Shown: positions 1-62,943 of the stretch, piece after piece
How the letters are laid out: each line of letters starts with the position of its first letter
Numbering within the stretch: the stretch's first letter is position 1
NCBI GenBank assembly: GCA_024704765.1
Contig: JAKMXF010000288.1
Coordinates: 485,445-549,444 of the forward strand
From: Oopsacas minuta
Lineage: Eukaryota > Animalia > Porifera
Direction: 5' to 3'
DNA: 64,000 nt
Program-made: the position numbers and the translations under genes
Notes under the pieces: generated by a model
Seen by the model: only the letters and a program-made list of their open reading frames with translations
What the model was told of the DNA's origin: nothing
Databases searched by the model: none

Positions 1-2970
1 CCCACTAAAATTTGTTAAAACTTCCATAGTTGGTTTGCCATTAACTGAGAATGCTTTGAGTCCATAATGCATTATGGAACCTAAATCGTAACTAACACCT
101 AAACTGTTGATTGACGTCTGTGTGTGTCTTGCGAAATTCACACGCTTTTCTGGGACAATGTTCTCCCAAAGTATCCGGACATATTGGCTTCTGTCTGGCC
201 GGGATTGCTCGTGCCAAAACCCAAGGGCGTGACATATCTCATGAATAATCATTCCCCTATTGTCACAAAATCGGACCGATATTATCTGTTCTCCTCTCCC
301 CTGCATGCCAACATTTGACGCACACCTAGAAAATTAGTAAATAAGTAAACAAATATGTAAATATGTGAAAGTATTATTAATCGTGTAGATATAAAATCGA
401 ATTGTCAAAATTGGAATCTACAGCCCAGTTAGCCGTTAAAGAGAATTTCTAGCATCTTTTTTAAATATTCCCCAAAAGGTGTGAAAATGTGATTAATCAC
501 ATGTTTGGTGTTATTTATCAGTACAACTTACATATAATTCCTACTCTCAAATAAGACATAATTCTCCTCATCATTTCGTTCCACAAATGTGACACAAGTC
601 TTTGAAGATATGTGATTCATAGCTCGATAGATTCTATCCTTTGTTCTTAGGCCTAAAAATAGAATATTCAAAGGTGTGAAATTGGCAGAATCGGGTTCGC
701 AATTTTCGGCGTCCCTTTCACACAATCTGTGGAGATTATACTGTATCCCAGTTATCGAACCATTCGGTCTATAGTTCCGTTATATACATATACAGTATAC
801 TCTGCTTAATAGGGTCACATTGGACCCAGAGGCCATTTGGACCGATTAAGTGGAGTCTACTGTAGTACCAAAATTGAAAATTATCACCTAACGAATGTGT
901 TTCCTTAGTTACCATAAATATTTGACCTTTCATAGTTGTATATATTTTTCTTTCATGTGTGGCTTTGTGGTTTGTACTGCTACTTCAATAATGTCAGTAA
1001 TTTCTTAATTGAATAGTAATGCATTATCAATAATCATATGGATATAACAGCAAGATACATATTGTAAACAAGCTCGTAAACAAAACACCAACATTGCTTA
1101 CATTCTTATAATTTATCTGAATTGAGTTAATTCGAATGTGGCCACTCGCTATAGTAAATACACTAATGGAATGTGTCGAGTATTATCTTGAGTAGAATTT
1201 TATTATTTACGAAGTGTGTATAACAGCTGATTTCGAGATAAATGGTGATGTTATATCATGAAACAGGTGTGAAAATATTCATATTTTAATTATTGTTGCA
1301 TAGTTGCACTTGCTCAGCTATACGTGCCACATGGCAGCCATATTCATGCCACTTTTTGCGAGGATAAAATGCCTTATAATTATTTTCTAATACTACTCTG
1401 CATACACCGTATACTCGACATATTTTGCCATGTGCCACTTGCACCACAAGTGGTAGAGTGCCACAATAAATTCCCCAGATTGTGAACCTCATATTGCACC
1501 CCTGTACCAATTTTCAAGTCGATCGGACCCATAGGGACCGCTGTAGCCCTTAATATTAAATTTTTCTGTTCTCAATGCGTGAACATATCGAATTGATACA
1601 CTAATTTGTACACTTAATGATTCAAATATGTATAATCATATGGAACTAAGAATATGGAACCAAGATTATCATCTTATTGAGTGTAATATTTAATTGTTTT
1701 CCAGTTATTACATTATCATCTTTCTGACAATCAGATTTACACATATCACTTATAATTGTGCTCTCGTGCCGATTAACTTGGATCAGCTGTTTGGAATTGG
1801 TAGAGGGCATGATAAAATATCTGGCGTGATATCCGCATGCCAATATTACCAAGTGGCAATTAGGAAGAGGTTGTTACTTTGTATGTTATTTCCTAATTAA
1901 TATTCTAAAATTTTGTTGTACTCATGCTAGAATTATGTGAGAATGGAATGTTGAGGATTACTCTACCTGGTTCCCATTGGTACTAACTACGGGGTCAGCT
2001 GTATTGTTTATTTATTTGTTTGTTTGTTAGTTAGTTAGTTTAAATGTTTGTTTGGGGAAACTTGATCCCTAACATACCTACATTCGGGACTTCATGGCAA
2101 TACGCAAACTGAAAATATAAAGTTTCTGTCATTCATATCTATAGTTCCATATTAACCTAATCAGGCGTTCAATGCAAACTATTCAAACTGCTAATTAGCG
2201 TAATTAATAATAATAATTCATATTATTATACTCAAAAGTGTATATACAAACAATAATTAACTTAGGAATATATTTACGTTACTCACCTACTGAACTATCA
2301 ATTAGATATGGCACAATAGCATTAGGCCACTTTGATATCTCCCATCTTGTAATAGCCCTCTCTGACAGTCGTCTTCTTGGCTTTAAGTGCCAGACTTTGT
2401 CCAGTAGCGGTTCGTTGAATTTAATATCACCTTCAAATAGTCCACCTTCTATATCACGTTGCCTAGCAACTAAATCATCTTTAGGAATGTCGTGTGTTAT
2501 ATTCAGAGAGTTTAATGCTCGTTTTAGTTCTCTGTATTCTCTACGTGTTAGATTCAATATGAACCAAAGTGTTACTAAAATAGATATATATCATATTTAT
2601 ATTTATTTCTGTCAAATTTATGGAAACAGTAGCCTCCTCTTAAAAGGGCCAATTGGACAGAACCAAAACCATATTATACATTCCAGTTAATGGCACAATT
2701 AAGTGGAGATACTGTATCCACTTTCTGCTTATAATTATTCCAAATATAACTAATAGAAATCGAACTTTTGTCATATGAATAATCAAATTGTTGTTAATTC
2801 ATTTCTGTATCTAACTTACTATTTTGATATTTATCTGTTTGTTCAAAGTTTTGCGGTATTTTCAGTTCACCGTTTCCAAAATATCTCCGTCGTTGTGGGA
2901 GAATAAAATCTGTCTGCAAACTCACTACAGCTGAAATAAACAAAAACACCAACAACAGATACAAACGCAT
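1..2970 (-). CDS. Astacin-family (M12A) zinc metalloprotease; 3' end runs off the window start
   Basis: Exons 2970-2871 (signal peptide MRLYLLLVFLFISAVVS), about 2575-2287 (propeptide GLFEGDI, then KWPNAIVPY), 652-532 and 325-1, with compatible splice phases. The last exon contains HEICHALGFWHEQSRPDR (HExxHxxGxxH) and the SIMHY Met-turn. Confidence 0.93.
793..862. mobile_element. 70-bp Tc1/mariner/pogo-type MITE
   Basis: TA|CAGTATACTCTGCTTAAT ... ATTAAGTGGAGTCTACTG|TA: 18-bp imperfect TIRs starting CAGT, with TA on both flanks. Confidence 0.7.
2627..2714. mobile_element. MITE related to the 793-862 element
   Basis: CAGTAGCCTCCTCTTAA ... TTAAGTGGAGATACTG|TA; same TIR family. The left TA is not preserved. 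Confidence 0.5.
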
Positions 2971-57900: not shown

Positions 57901-58763
57901 TGGAGTCAGCTGACTAAGTTGTGCTATCAACACATCACGCTCCCGCGTACAGCTGCTCAGATCTTGCTGTAGATAGCGCGCCTGATCTCCCTGCACACTC
58001 AGCTGTTCTTGTAATCTCTCTTTCTGATCTAATAACTTCTCTAGAATCTATAAATAGAACCATGGATAACAACCAATAAATAATCTAATTATATAAATAT
58101 TCTCGCATAATGACCCTTGCTTGTACAAGTATCACTAATTTGATAGGTTAATTTGTAAGGAAATCTTAGACTTCTAATCTAATTAATTCACAAAGCAGAA
58201 ACCACTGATTGAATAGCCAATCAGATTACATCTAAGTTAGTGGTCAGAATTATTAAATAATTACCTGTAAGCTAAACCAATCAATTTCCGTCTTTGCTTA
58301 CAAATCAGAACTTTAGTAGCCAAATTTAAAATAGGCGCCATATATGAGATATTATCTAATCTACCAATCAAATTCATTCCTCAGAACACACTCCTACTCA
58401 TGCTAGATATCACATAACATGTTGTAAGTTAAGCAGAAATTAAATAGTATCACATTCCTGAGTGTAATTTGGTTGTTATGCACTTACCTGCTCTAAATGT
58501 TGAGGACTTAGAGCTGTCATATCGTGCTCAGGAGAGAGGGAGAGGGTTAGAGTGTTTGAGGGCTCCCAAATTGTGTCCAATTCATCTGTCCCAGGGCCGA
58601 TGGGGGTGAGGACAGGGGAGGGTGTCGCTGGTTCATTTCTCTGCGGAGAGAGATTGAGAGCGTCCGGTTTCTTGCGTTCCAGTTTGACTGCAGGAGGAGA
58701 TAGAGATCTGGTCCTGTTTAGTTCGGGAAGTGGCGGTGAATGTTTATTTCTGGAATCTGACAT
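54986..58763 (-). CDS. PPFIA: Liprin-alpha (coiled coils plus three SAM domains)
   Basis: [32 protein letters not shown]...[20 protein letters not shown]; SAM motifs [30 protein letters not shown] and [15 protein letters not shown]. Confidence 0.95.
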
Positions 58764-58894
58764 TCTAAAATGTAAATTAATCAGAAACACAGTATTTATA
58801 CTCAACCAATCAGCGACTAGCTTTAAACTAAGGATTGCAGTAAGCTTTCAAATCCAAATAAATTCAAAATTCAAAAAATACAAAATCTGATTGG

Positions 58895-61800
58895 TCAGTT
58901 AGGCTTAGCAACTGGGGAGAAATGAAGGTTAGCCCGAATTGTGAAGAATTCAGTTCCAGTTCTGCCCGCCGGGTAGTGACAGACGTGATGAGCTGTGTCT
59001 TTGATTGGTTCTTCTGTAGCTTGTCCTACAATTATGTAATCATAAAGTAAACAAATAAATATACAACAAGAAATATTTACCGAGTAGCCAGGTCGCGAGA
59101 GATTGTTCCGGTTTCAGTTTAAAATATTCGTAGCAATCTTTGTGTAAGAAATATTGTTTATTGTCAATACAGAATGCTTTAGGAACGCTCTTATAAGGTC
59201 CCATCGGTTTAGTCGGTAGGAAAAGTACGAAACTTCCTTTCTTAAAATCTGCAACACTAAACCGAGCGCTCGTGGGATCCCTCGCCTCCTCATTTGTCAA
59301 TTTCCTACCAACCTCTGCCTTCATTTGTTCTAGCATAGAGCTGGGATATCTGTAACAACCAATCAAATTATGAGCTTAAACAACCAATCAAAAATTAATA
59401 GTCTTACCTTTGTACACTTCTAGAAAGTTCTCTACAACTGGCGCCTAAAGTAGGCTCCCAATCAGCTGTTTGAAATTCTTCACTCAGCTGATCTTCCAAT
59501 GGCGGTTCCAATACTCCCAAAGTTCCTTTCAGCCAATCAAGCCATGAGCTACATTCTGCTATCTATACACAATTGAATAGGAACTAAACCTATTAATTAG
59601 TTCCATATATCAATGATATCTCAGGAATATTACTATAAACGGGACCGATAGGATCCTTAGCTGGATATTAAATATGAATATTTCACACCTTAGAATTTGC
59701 AGAATCGATCACACTTTGTACGATTGGTTTAGCTTCTCTCTCCTTGTCTAGTTGACCAATCAGCTGTTCGTTTTCTACCTTTAATTTGGTGCTAGATTCG
59801 ATCAGCTGTTTATTTTCTCTTTCAAGTTCTGACAATTTCAGTTGTAAGCGACGTGATTGGTCAGAATTGTCCTGTGTGCTCCCCGGGTTCTGATTGGTCA
59901 GTTTAGGTGTCTGAATAATCGCCAGTAAAATAGACTGTAATTTGTCGTTAATTGAATTAATTTTAATTGAGTGAATTTCCTAAAAATAGATTAATAACAT
60001 TCCATTCTATCAACCCAGCAACCACTGACCTTCATTTCCTTTTCGAGCGCCAAAAGCGCTATTTTCGAGTTCTGAAATTGTGACAGAACTTGACAATTGG
60101 AATTCAGTCTGTAATGTATTTGTACACTCATGTCTTGGTGTCTGTTCTCAATATTCATTCTGATTGTCTTAGCTCTGGCCAGCTGTTCTGCCACCTGTAA
60201 TCTCTTAAGAGCTCTACACTCTCCTAGTAACGGTCTACAAACATAGGAATGTTAGAACATTGCTACTAATGAACACAATCAGCTGACCTGATAATATCTC
60301 TGACGGAGAGAGGCGGAGCTCTCTCCGTGTCGGACATTAGAGCTCCGTGTCTCCTGATAACATCAGCGTCTATTTCTGCAATTGAATCCTCCAAATGTGT
60401 CCTAATTGATTCCAGTTCTGCTGCCATCTCTCTGAAACTAACACATTCCTCTCCGTAACTAAGATTAAGAGAATCTGTGTAGCTAGTCAGCTGATTGGTT
60501 AGATAAGTAATCCTCATTCTGAGGGGATTTAACTCCTCATTCAGTTTAACTCTCATATTTTTGTGTCTCTCCTTCGCCCCCAGGGCATACTGAATATAGG
60601 CGCTAAGTCCTGACACCTAAGATAATTATAAACACAGATATTTGATTGGTTACTGAACTCGCCTGTGAATCAGCTGTTAGGTCTATATCCTTGACAAGCT
60701 TAGAGAATATTTGAGGGATAAATTCTATGTTATCTCTCGTCCGAACTTCTTCTATCCTTTCTGGAGATTTAAGGAATTCTGTCAGCTCCTCGTAGGCCAG
60801 GAGGGGAAGGAGAGGAGGGTCCATCTGTGAGAGAATTGATTGGTCCAGCAGAAATAGTTTGGGATCTTTACCGGAACTTCCGAACTGCTGAGACTTTGAA
60901 AAGTTTACAAAACGCTAAAATTAGAATAAATTTATTCACTAATCCATGGTTACATAATACAAACTAACGTCTAAGTCTGATTGGTCAGTAATTGTAGATT
61001 CTGCCTGTAATGTGTCTCTTATTATTACAATATTATCCAATTGGATATTAAAGTCTGTGTGTATAACAATCCTAAGCTCTGAGAGGAGTAGAGGACCATC
61101 TCCGTAAGGGATCTTACTCTCCAGACCGGAGTGTACAGACACTAACCGAATCTTAGTCTGTACAAGATCGTCAACAGTCTAATTAGACCAATATAACAAA
61201 TCTCAAATCTCCTTATAATTCAAATTTATACAAAATTGTTATTCAAGAAAATTTATGGCAGAATTCTCCACTAATAAAGACGCTAAGAATTGGCTCTGTA
61301 TTATAATTACAAACCTCGAAGAATGCGTCATACGTAATTCTATTAGTTGCTTCTACAACTAAACACCTCTTAATTAACCACGTCATTCTATCCTTGAATA
61401 CAGGTGTTAGAATATCATCTACTTCAGGGGGAAGCTCTCTAACATAAGTTGTCTTCCTGGAATGGCGCGTAAATGCAATGGCATCTCCTAACAATAATAA
61501 TTAAGTAAATTCCATTGAATAGTTATATAGCAACGCACCTTTTGCCTTAAGAATTCTAAGAATATCTTGTATAGGAGCAAAGAACCCACACTTCCCTACT
61601 AGTACCCTGTAGAGGAGAGCTCCTACTGACCAGATGTCTACCGTATGGTCATATGATCCTCCAGGATACATCACACAATACAGAGCTTCAGGCGCCATAA
61701 ATACAGGGGTACCCGCTAGGGATTCCATATCGATATTTCTGTTAGCGAACTCTCCCGTATTCTCCTTGTAGAACCTGGAATAACCGAAATCTGCCAATCT

Positions 61801-62462
61801 AATGTCCCACTCATTGGTCTGTTCCTGGCCCCTTGTCCTCCTATCTGCCCCTGGGAACTTAAGGAGGATATTCTGAGGCTTCAGGTCTCTGTGTACAATA
61901 CTGAGGTTATGCATAGCCCTAATACCTATGCTCAGCTGTTTCAGGAATCTATAAATAGATGAATGAACTTAAGAAATGTATAAATTAATTATTTATACTT
62001 CTCACCTCCTGAATTGTTTCTCAGTTATTTCATTCTTTTTTAAATATTCTTCCAAATCGCAGTCACATATTTCCATAACCAGAACCATCCCAAGCCCTTT
62101 CTGTTCCTCTACTTGCATCAGACGAACCACAAACTCACAACTTATTAATTCCTAAATACATTCCTTTAAAATATGATTAATGAGTCTATAAATAGAATCC
62201 TCACTTCCATTATTTTAATCTCCCGTTTCAGATTTGTGTAAACTTTGTGCTCTTTTTTGTAGAAATCTTCCTTGACAACCTTTACGGCTACTTGGAATGA
62301 TTCATGATCGCTATAACCAAGGAAAACTTCTCCAAATGCGCCTTTTCCTAAACGAGTGGTTGAGCTTTGGTGCCAGGAAAAATCTCCAGAACCTTTAAAC
62401 TCTGCCGGGTTCTGTTTGTGGAGTTCCTTTAGTGCCATAATATGCATTCTTTTACCAAGCAT
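58895..62462 (-). CDS. ULK/TBK1-like Ser/Thr kinase fused to a ubiquitin-like domain, helical scaffold, coiled coil and an ATG11/FIP200-type Claw domain
   Basis: Twelve exons join in phase with no stop. Kinase motifs LGKGAFGEV, VAVK, HRDLKPQNILL, DFG and MAPE are intact. The C-terminus reads RFSVADFKKGSFVLF...YFLHKDC...WLLGQ...GTEFFTIRA. The start lies between 62438 and 62462. Confidence 0.85.
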
Positions 62463-62837
62463 TGTTGCTAAGAAGATGGGACAAATGTATAACATAACTA
62501 TATTAATATTTCCCCGCGGATTACGAGCGGTGAATAGGGTAGCGCACAAGGGGATCAGACATTTATAATAGTGGGTAAATGGATCAGTTAGAGTTAGCAG
62601 AATTGTGAAAATATATATTAATAGTTTGTATTAGTTATAACTAGAAATTAAATATTTGTAACATTAATATAAAGATATACTAAAGACAGTGATCATGTAA
62701 GTAATGGATGGATTCTATTCCGCAATTATAAGATAGTAGACATGCCAAATTTGGTGTCGCAATCTTTGAAGATAGACAACGATTATAGAAATAGAGACTA
62801 TTATATGTAAGAGCATTAGTGAAAAAGATTATTAGAT

Positions 62838-62943
62838 GTCAGGATGGCCGAGTGGTCTAAGGCGCCAGACTCAAGGTTACCTTACTCTTAGGGAGTTTTC
62901 TGGTCCACGTATGTGGGCGTGGGTTCGAATCCCACTTCTGACA
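62838..62943 (+). tRNA. tRNA-Leu(CAA) with a 22-nt intron
   Basis: GTCAGGATGGCCGAGTGGTCTAAGGCG-CCAGA-CTCAAG[intron 62876-62897]T-TCTGG...GGTTCGAATCCCACTTCTGACA, followed by a T-run Pol III terminator. Confidence 0.95.

Follow-up and report, generated by a model that had tools for sequence, protein, structure and literature searches.

A kinase–Claw gene in Oopsacas minuta: a ULK-like kinase and a FIP200/Atg11-type Claw in one polypeptide, with a possible role in selective autophagy

The window analyzed here is a 64,000-nucleotide stretch of the Oopsacas minuta genome (assembly GCA_024704765.1, contig JAKMXF010000288.1, positions 485,445 to 549,444 of the forward strand). Its minus strand carries a gene, here called the kinase-Claw gene, that encodes a protein kinase domain and a C-terminal Claw domain of the FIP200/Atg11 type; the coding sequence begins with an ATG at 62462 and closes with a TGA ending at 58895. 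Searching the minus strand of 58700–62600 for in-phase GT-AG chains yielded 12 exons that join in phase with zero internal stops and encode 942 amino acids (aa). A first-pass annotation of the sequence had given the gene exactly these two ends and had predicted 12 exons in phase without a stop and a product of about 900–1000 aa; the present model bears this out, the length of 942 aa being reached after correction of one donor site to GC-AG, and every motif quoted in the annotation is present in the product. Signature motifs lie at aa 154–161 (HRDLKPQN), 219–222 (MAPE), 338–344 (KIRLVSV), and 418–423 (KLFLLD) and, in the C-terminal part, at aa 838–845 (ARFSVADF), 897–900 (WLLG), and 926–931 (FFTIRA).

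The introns measure 46–136 nt, and 10 of the 11 are of the GT-AG type. The exception is intron 6 (60662–60617, minus strand), a GC-AG intron with the donor GCGAGT, so that exon 6 ends at 60663. This end was chosen over a GT donor further down because of an RNA joint between 60663 and 60616 and because in L005, an orthologous locus from another assembly, a single open reading frame (ORF) covers exons 6 and 7 and lacks the residues, three in number, that the GT donor would add. The RNA contig that carries the joint differs from the window by one base at 60664, possibly reflecting an allele or a paralog. The resulting features, all on the minus strand, are as follows.

58895..62462, minus strand: whole coding region, 942 codons plus stop (exon model, RNA joints, collinear orthologs)
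62205..62462, minus strand: exon 1, aa 1–86; start, GKGAFG (aa 39–44), VAVK lysine (aa 61), alpha-C glutamate (Pfam Pkinase/PK_Tyr_Ser-Thr match)
62006..62151, minus strand: exon 2, aa 87–135; kinase hinge, alpha-D/E (RNA loose ends at both junctions)
61539..61948, minus strand: exon 3, aa 135–271; HRDLKPQN, 14-residue insert, DFG, activation loop, APE (Pfam Pkinase, 87.9 bits)
61315..61487, minus strand: exon 4, aa 272–329; end of the kinase C-lobe (RNA loose end 61315/61178)
60969..61178, minus strand: exon 5, aa 330–399; putative ubiquitin-like segment, first four elements (RNA joint; matches a continuous ORF of clade B)
60663..60914, minus strand: exon 6, aa 400–483; last strand of the putative ubiquitin-like segment (DPKLFLLD) and first scaffold helices, GC donor (RNA joint)
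60288..60616, minus strand: exon 7, aa 484–593; predicted helical scaffold (RNA joint; 59% identity to L005, pN/pS about 0.3)
60030..60234, minus strand: exon 8, aa 593–661; predicted helical scaffold (RNA joint equivalent to 59979/60030)
59689..59979, minus strand: exon 9, aa 662–758; coiled coil at aa 704–743, RRLQLKLSELERENKQL... (weak Pfam ZapB and YabA matches; RNA joint)
59408..59562, minus strand: exon 10, aa 759–810; linker with the acidic-aromatic EEFQTADWEP (RNA joint; stretch kept in P0001 and L005)
59081..59349, minus strand: exon 11, aa 811–900; bulk of the Claw, from about 59267 (Pfam PF10377 ATG11)
58895..59025, minus strand: exon 12, aa 900–942 plus stop; final Claw strands, CHYPAGRTGTEFFTIRA (RNA joint; ORFs of the relatives P0005–P0011 align)

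Four public sequencing runs of one sample cover this stretch. In three of them the introns are covered at full depth, and these runs are DNA-like; in the fourth, X4, depth is zero inside introns, and it was therefore treated as RNA. X4 supports the splicing of 10 of the 11 introns, with joints for introns 5 to 11 and loose ends for introns 1, 2, and 4, the letters of these loose ends equaling the neighboring exon exactly. The loose ends are found at 62151/62205 (intron 1), at 61948/62006 (intron 2), and at 61315/61178, where the last kinase exon is connected with the ubiquitin-like exon. Joints were recorded at 60914/60969 (depth 6115), 59562/59689 (9475), and 59349/59408 (8570), as well as at 60234/60288 and 59025/59081; one further joint is equivalent to 59979/60030, and another is consistent with 60663/60616. 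Within intron 3 (61538–61488), X4 depth is 0 (61490–61533) and exceeds 20,000 on either side, the joint itself not being among those listed. Beyond about 62483 the RNA depth drops to 0, which makes 62462 the first ATG of the transcript, and the L005 ortholog begins at the homologous methionine. The RNA contigs are short, and the gene is covered by a chain of junctions, with no single contig spanning all exons. The kinase-Claw gene is real, expressed, and intact. That kinase and Claw belong to one transcript and one polypeptide, as had been claimed, is supported by this chain of junctions together with the Pfam, Claw profile, and fold matches given below.

Could the gene instead be an artifact, in which a kinase and a FIP200-like neighbor were wrongly joined, or in which the assembly is chimeric? 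In the DNA-like runs, the depth over 58800–61815 is 5–7 times that over 61816–62600, and the contig graph forks within exon 3, at 61815, leading into an unrelated continuation; the unlisted exon 3–4 joint and the lack of one RNA contig across the gene would also fit such an error. However, the junction between the kinase and the ubiquitin-like exon at 61315/61178 is observed in RNA, exon 3 is single and uninterrupted across the branch point in L005, L011, and L013, the same order of parts recurs in at least eight loci of other assemblies and in two clades, and synteny with the downstream neighbor is maintained in L005. We regard an artifact as extremely improbable. Since exon 3 is uninterrupted across the equivalent of 61815 in all orthologs, the structure in the window is the ancestral one. 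The depth step and the branching, together with a deletion of 2 bases that most DNA contigs show in an exon 7 A-run (60562), suggest that the sample also contains, at other places in the genome, several nearly identical copies with a truncated 5' end and a frameshift. In RNA, the deletion accounts for about 15% of the depth and the intact form for about 85%, and we read this as the intact copy in the window providing most transcripts.

The loci from other assemblies, at least eight of which have the kinase, middle region, and Claw in the same order, form two deeply diverged clades. Those of clade A (L005, L011, and L013/L014) are collinear with the window over aa 1/2–941/942, on one strand and within 3.3–3.9 kb, at identities of 54–85% per segment. 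Clade B (L001 and L008–L010) maintains the order at about 60% identity in the kinase and 22–34% elsewhere. The arrangement is thus conserved, with collinear homologs in other assemblies. Members of both clades occur in metagenomes of a single study (sample names BUSC20-1), which, from the link we infer between sample and project, probably derive from the glass sponge Vazella pourtalesii (BioProject PRJNA613976). The co-occurrence of both clades in one, probably glass-sponge, study would therefore mean that the fusion predates a duplication within glass sponges. A pattern scan of JGI metagenomes for the Claw returned zero relatives.

Relative to L005, synonymous sites are saturated, with a proportion of synonymous differences (pS) of about 0.87, against which the proportion of nonsynonymous differences (pN) amounts to 0.10 for the kinase, 0.15 for the Claw, and 0.20–0.27 for the other parts; pN/pS is 0.12–0.33 across all domains. 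Such low pN against saturated pS identifies all parts as constrained coding sequence, and by this measure every domain is under purifying selection. These values also bear on the idea that the gene is a decaying, functionless member of a lineage-specific duplicate family, for which the truncated and frameshifted near-copies (the deletion at 60562 and the divergence upstream of 61815) and several partial inverted copies on L012 might be cited. The copy in the window, by contrast, is intact over 942 codons and accounts for most of the RNA depth at 60562, pN/pS is low in all domains, and the catalytic motifs show no variation across the two clades; decay appears very unlikely.

The kinase domain comprises aa 35–329, with Pfam Pkinase matches in exons 1 and 3, and its Gly-rich loop, Lys61, HRDLKPQN, DFG, and APE are all intact. 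When exon 3 was compared as a single sequence with the PDB, ULK1 scored 72 bits and ULK2 70, the next family following at 53; with a five-sequence family profile, the scores were 64.6 for ULK2, 61.8 for ULK1, and 59.7 bits for phosphorylase kinase. TBK1 and IKK chains were missing both from the 41 single-sequence hits that reached E below 1e-10 and from the 60 top-ranked profile hits. Judged by best hit, the kinase appears ULK-like, and on this ranking, led by ULK1/2 and listing TBK1/IKK in neither search, a kinase of the TBK1 type was rejected. The description in the first-pass annotation, an Atg1/TBK1-type kinase, consequently holds in its first half: the domain is intact and ULK-like by the PDB ranking, and the motifs HRDLKPQNILL and MAPE, taken there as ULK-like, are present. 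Its second half fails, and with it the 'TBK1-like' reading of SLxGT in the activation loop, a pattern that is generic and common rather than specific to TBK1.

At the C-terminus, exon 11 alone matches Pfam PF10377 (ATG11) with 24.7 bits against a cut-off of 22. An exhaustive HMMER search with exon 11 returned three genuine relatives, all exon-sized ORFs; two matches from the representative search, P0003 and P0004, were tandem-repeat artifacts and were discarded. In P0005 and six further relatives (P0005–P0011) the whole Claw lies within a single ORF, and because exons 11 and 12 of the window align end to end onto the P0005 ORF, the splice between them is confirmed. In the PDB, a profile of the Claw alignment (A1) found nothing but FIP200 Claw chains down to E 0.19, the best at E 0.0023, with one unrelated chain next at E 0.28. 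An AlphaFold model of the Claw, built from a shallow alignment (predicted local distance difference test, pLDDT, 52), had the C-terminal region of FIP200 as its six best Foldseek matches in the PDB. The eight best matches in the VIA fold search were likewise the FIP200 Claw, with fold matches spanning the whole domain, and the matches of the model in the AlphaFold database were Atg11 C-terminal proteins. A feature search of ESM-Atlas with the Claw ORF returned nothing but unrelated coiled-coil or viral families, and a shape search with the Claw model returned nothing informative. The C-terminus is a genuine FIP200/Atg11 Claw; the annotation had claimed as much, and the PF10377 score above cut-off, the PDB profile, and the fold matches agree with it.

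About 45 residues N-terminal of the Claw lies the stretch EEFQTADWEP (aa ~786–797; 59440–59480, minus strand), which reads DEFQTAEWEP in an ortholog. It recalls the FIP200-interacting and LC3-interacting (FIR/LIR) motifs of receptors and, as pure speculation, might be bound by the Claw of its own chain or might itself bind ATG8.

Between these two domains, the region of aa 330–760 is harder to assign. Only a few residues separate the end of the kinase (aa 329) from the first predicted strand (from aa 338); a low-confidence model of the paralog L010 predicts two strands, a helix, and two more strands, in this order, and then long helices. DPKLFLL falls where FIP200 and TBK1 carry an NPIF motif, at the interface of ubiquitin-like domain (ULD) and scaffold (PMC7337493). 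The N-terminal domain of FIP200 resembles the ULD plus scaffold of TBK1 (PMC7337493), and Atg11/FIP200 proteins have in common a ubiquitin-like (Ubl) domain, an Atg17-like domain, and an Atg11 domain, CDD cd17060 being the N-terminal ubiquitin-like domain of this family (PMC7511232). In a comparison of language-model features with L010:4498–5235, the sole piece that reads uninterrupted through the ubiquitin-like part, Atg17-like clusters were the best named matches, at 0.90 (181 shared features) and 0.86 (176), and ubiquitin-like families came next. Exon 9 contains a heptad coiled coil at aa 704–743, as had been predicted. Taken together, it is likely that the middle region is an N-terminal module of the Atg11/FIP200 type. 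The ubiquitin-like segment and scaffold proposed at first pass remain putative for aa 330–660, where they draw on the predicted order of elements, the DPKLF motif, and the language-model match of the paralog; Pfam, PDB profile, and AlphaFold gave nothing usable.

These assignments suggest what the protein may do. For autophagy to start, the kinase ULK1/Atg1 must normally be recruited to a second protein, the scaffold FIP200/Atg11, which recognizes cargo receptors through its Claw. We propose, with a probability of roughly 0.6, that the kinase-Claw protein is a hard-wired Atg1–Atg11 unit, that is, a ULK/Atg1-like kinase with a miniature Atg11/FIP200-type scaffold, which would serve selective autophagy. 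By analogy with FIP200, Atg11, and TBK1, the helical and coiled-coil part would dimerize the protein, and the Claw would bind acidic or phosphorylated short motifs on cargo receptors. Clustering on cargo could then allow the tethered kinase domains to autophosphorylate their activation loops, and the active kinase might phosphorylate receptors or core autophagy factors and so start selective autophagy locally. Such a fusion is functionally sensible because an artificial Atg1–leucine-zipper fusion bypasses Atg11 in yeast: in Schizosaccharomyces pombe, Atg11 acts chiefly by dimerizing Atg1 (PMC7511232). In that construct, as is proposed here, the kinase is covalently joined to a dimerizing element, dimerization being a prediction in our case; the zipper fusion is artificial and without a Claw, whereas the protein described here is natural and conserved and has the potential to dock cargo.

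Several observations weigh against this proposal. In the profile search, ULK is ahead of phosphorylase kinase and CaMK-type kinases by just 5 bits. The model of the Claw is of low confidence, as its pLDDT of 52 indicates, and in the hidden Markov model (HMM) alignment the basic pocket residues of human FIP200, located before the last strands, stand opposite non-basic residues, so that the ligand may differ; the specificity of the Claw may thus not be that of human FIP200. In the language-model search with L010, the tool itself warned that the top family was common to just 2 of the 10 best named matches, and in the ESM-Atlas feature search the helical piece of L005, from which the ubiquitin-like part is missing, matched nothing but unrelated coiled-coil or viral families. 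Pfam searches of the middle region (E up to 10, including PF04108) and PDB profile searches were blank. Finally, modeling followed by Foldseek, which led to FIP200 for the Claw, was uninformative for the middle region: the AlphaFold model of the L010 ubiquitin-like and scaffold piece had a pLDDT of 39, and its fold matches were meaningless.

The protein can be compared with several known systems. ULK1, ULK2, and Atg1 provide the nearest solved kinase domains and share HRDLKPQNILL and G(T/S)PxxMAPE with it. Compared with them, the protein is without a Ser/Pro-rich linker, has a 14-residue insert before DFG, and continues directly from the kinase into the putative ubiquitin-like segment; their ATG13-binding tandem-MIT/EAT domain was not found by Pfam in exons 5–9, 11, and 12. 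TBK1 and IKK-epsilon consist of a kinase, a ubiquitin-like domain, a long helical scaffold, and a C-terminal adaptor-docking module, an order that the partly putative modules of the present protein match, but the kinase here is not of the IKK type, and the C-terminus is a Claw instead of the coiled-coil C-terminal domain (CTD) of TBK1 or a NEMO-binding domain. The likeness to TBK1 gives rise to an alternative in which the architecture is the same and the job a different one: a TBK1-like signaling kinase of innate immunity or stress, in which the Claw would solely dock adaptors and autophagosomes would not be initiated directly. The order of modules copies that of TBK1 as compared with FIP200 (PMC7337493), the basic residues of the Claw pocket are not obviously kept, and no ATG13-binding tandem-MIT was found in the exons scanned. 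On the other side, the kinase resembles ULK1/2 more closely than it does the IKKs or TBK1. Outside the kinase-Claw family, moreover, we know the Claw (PF10377) solely from autophagy scaffolds. We consider a TBK1-like job rather unlikely.

FIP200/RB1CC1 and Atg11 also end in a PF10377 Claw preceded by a coiled coil, and their probable counterparts here, a Ubl and an Atg17-like region, come in the same order. Atg11/FIP200 proteins are 1,200–1,600 aa long and form a non-enzymatic scaffold that binds a separate Atg1/ULK; in the kinase-Claw protein, by contrast, the scaffold measures about 610 aa, an active-looking kinase is N-terminal on the same chain, the Ubl and Atg17-like parts escape detection by HMMs, and the basic pocket residues of the human protein are not clearly kept. 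A further alternative takes the fusion for the FIP200/Atg11 ortholog of the glass sponge itself, which would have captured a kinase and would replace the canonical multi-subunit ULK complex. Two deeply diverged paralogs (about 29% identity in the Claw region), apparently in one host, are less what one would expect of a core gene than of an accessory family, and a scaffold of 600 aa falls short of the 1,200–1,600 aa of the known proteins. The order Ubl, Atg17-like, Atg11 domain of the non-kinase part does, on the other hand, define Atg11/FIP200 (PMC7511232). On balance we think this alternative has a small chance of being correct.

The annotation had also considered a relic linking TBK1/IKK with FIP200 ancestry and had named xenophagy as a possible function. 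Equally slender is the chance of a bolder variant, in which an ancestral state, retained or formed anew in the kinase-Claw protein, would explain why TBK1 and FIP200 are structurally alike. A single chain of kinase, ULD, scaffold, and Claw would then suffice to sense cargo receptors and start selective autophagy without ATG13/ATG101, and TBK1 (kinase, ULD, scaffold) and FIP200 (ULD, scaffold, Claw) would be its two truncated descendants or relatives.

All domains of the protein are of known kinds, and the combination of a kinase with a Claw scaffold is new to us. The annotation knew of no characterized protein with this architecture, and in our searches of the literature no account of a kinase-Claw protein turned up; uncharacterized database entries with that layout may exist (InterPro architectures unqueried). 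If the proposed hard-wired Atg1–Atg11 unit is real, it would offer a minimal system for how clustering on cargo turns a kinase on, a natural test of the yeast result that Atg11 chiefly dimerizes Atg1 (PMC7511232), and a concrete sequence with which the evolutionary connection suggested for TBK1 and FIP200 (PMC7337493) can be examined. Glass sponges, as this family shows, carry unexplored variants of core cell-biology machinery.

Some features of the homologous loci and of the surroundings of the gene are recorded here. On L012 (1–10973), from another assembly, four partial clade-A copies alternate in orientation, which may be a true inverted duplication or an assembly palindrome. In L001, the long intron separating the kinase exons from the ubiquitin-like exon contains, on the other strand, an NHL-repeat-like ORF (1517–2209, minus strand). 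The introns of clade B are full of microsatellites that are open in frame (L010 4640–4700 and 5240–5600; L001 2850–2900), which is why they appear in ORF calls as poly-Val, poly-Leu, or CLFV repeats. The gene downstream of the kinase-Claw gene in the window (58476–58805, minus strand) starts about 130 nt past the stop codon and encodes a Pro/Ser-rich protein; it is kept at the same position in L005 (10677–10961, plus strand).

Just upstream of the kinase-Claw gene is an intron-containing tRNA gene of 106 nt (62838–62943, plus strand), which scores 50.6 bits with the Rfam tRNA model and is not called by ARAGORN. The octamer CCAATCAG, or its complement CTGATTGG, is present at 35 sites of the window, where shuffles lead one to expect 2.4. 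Seven of the sites lie within 58806–60984, and exons, introns, and intergenic DNA all contain the octamer.

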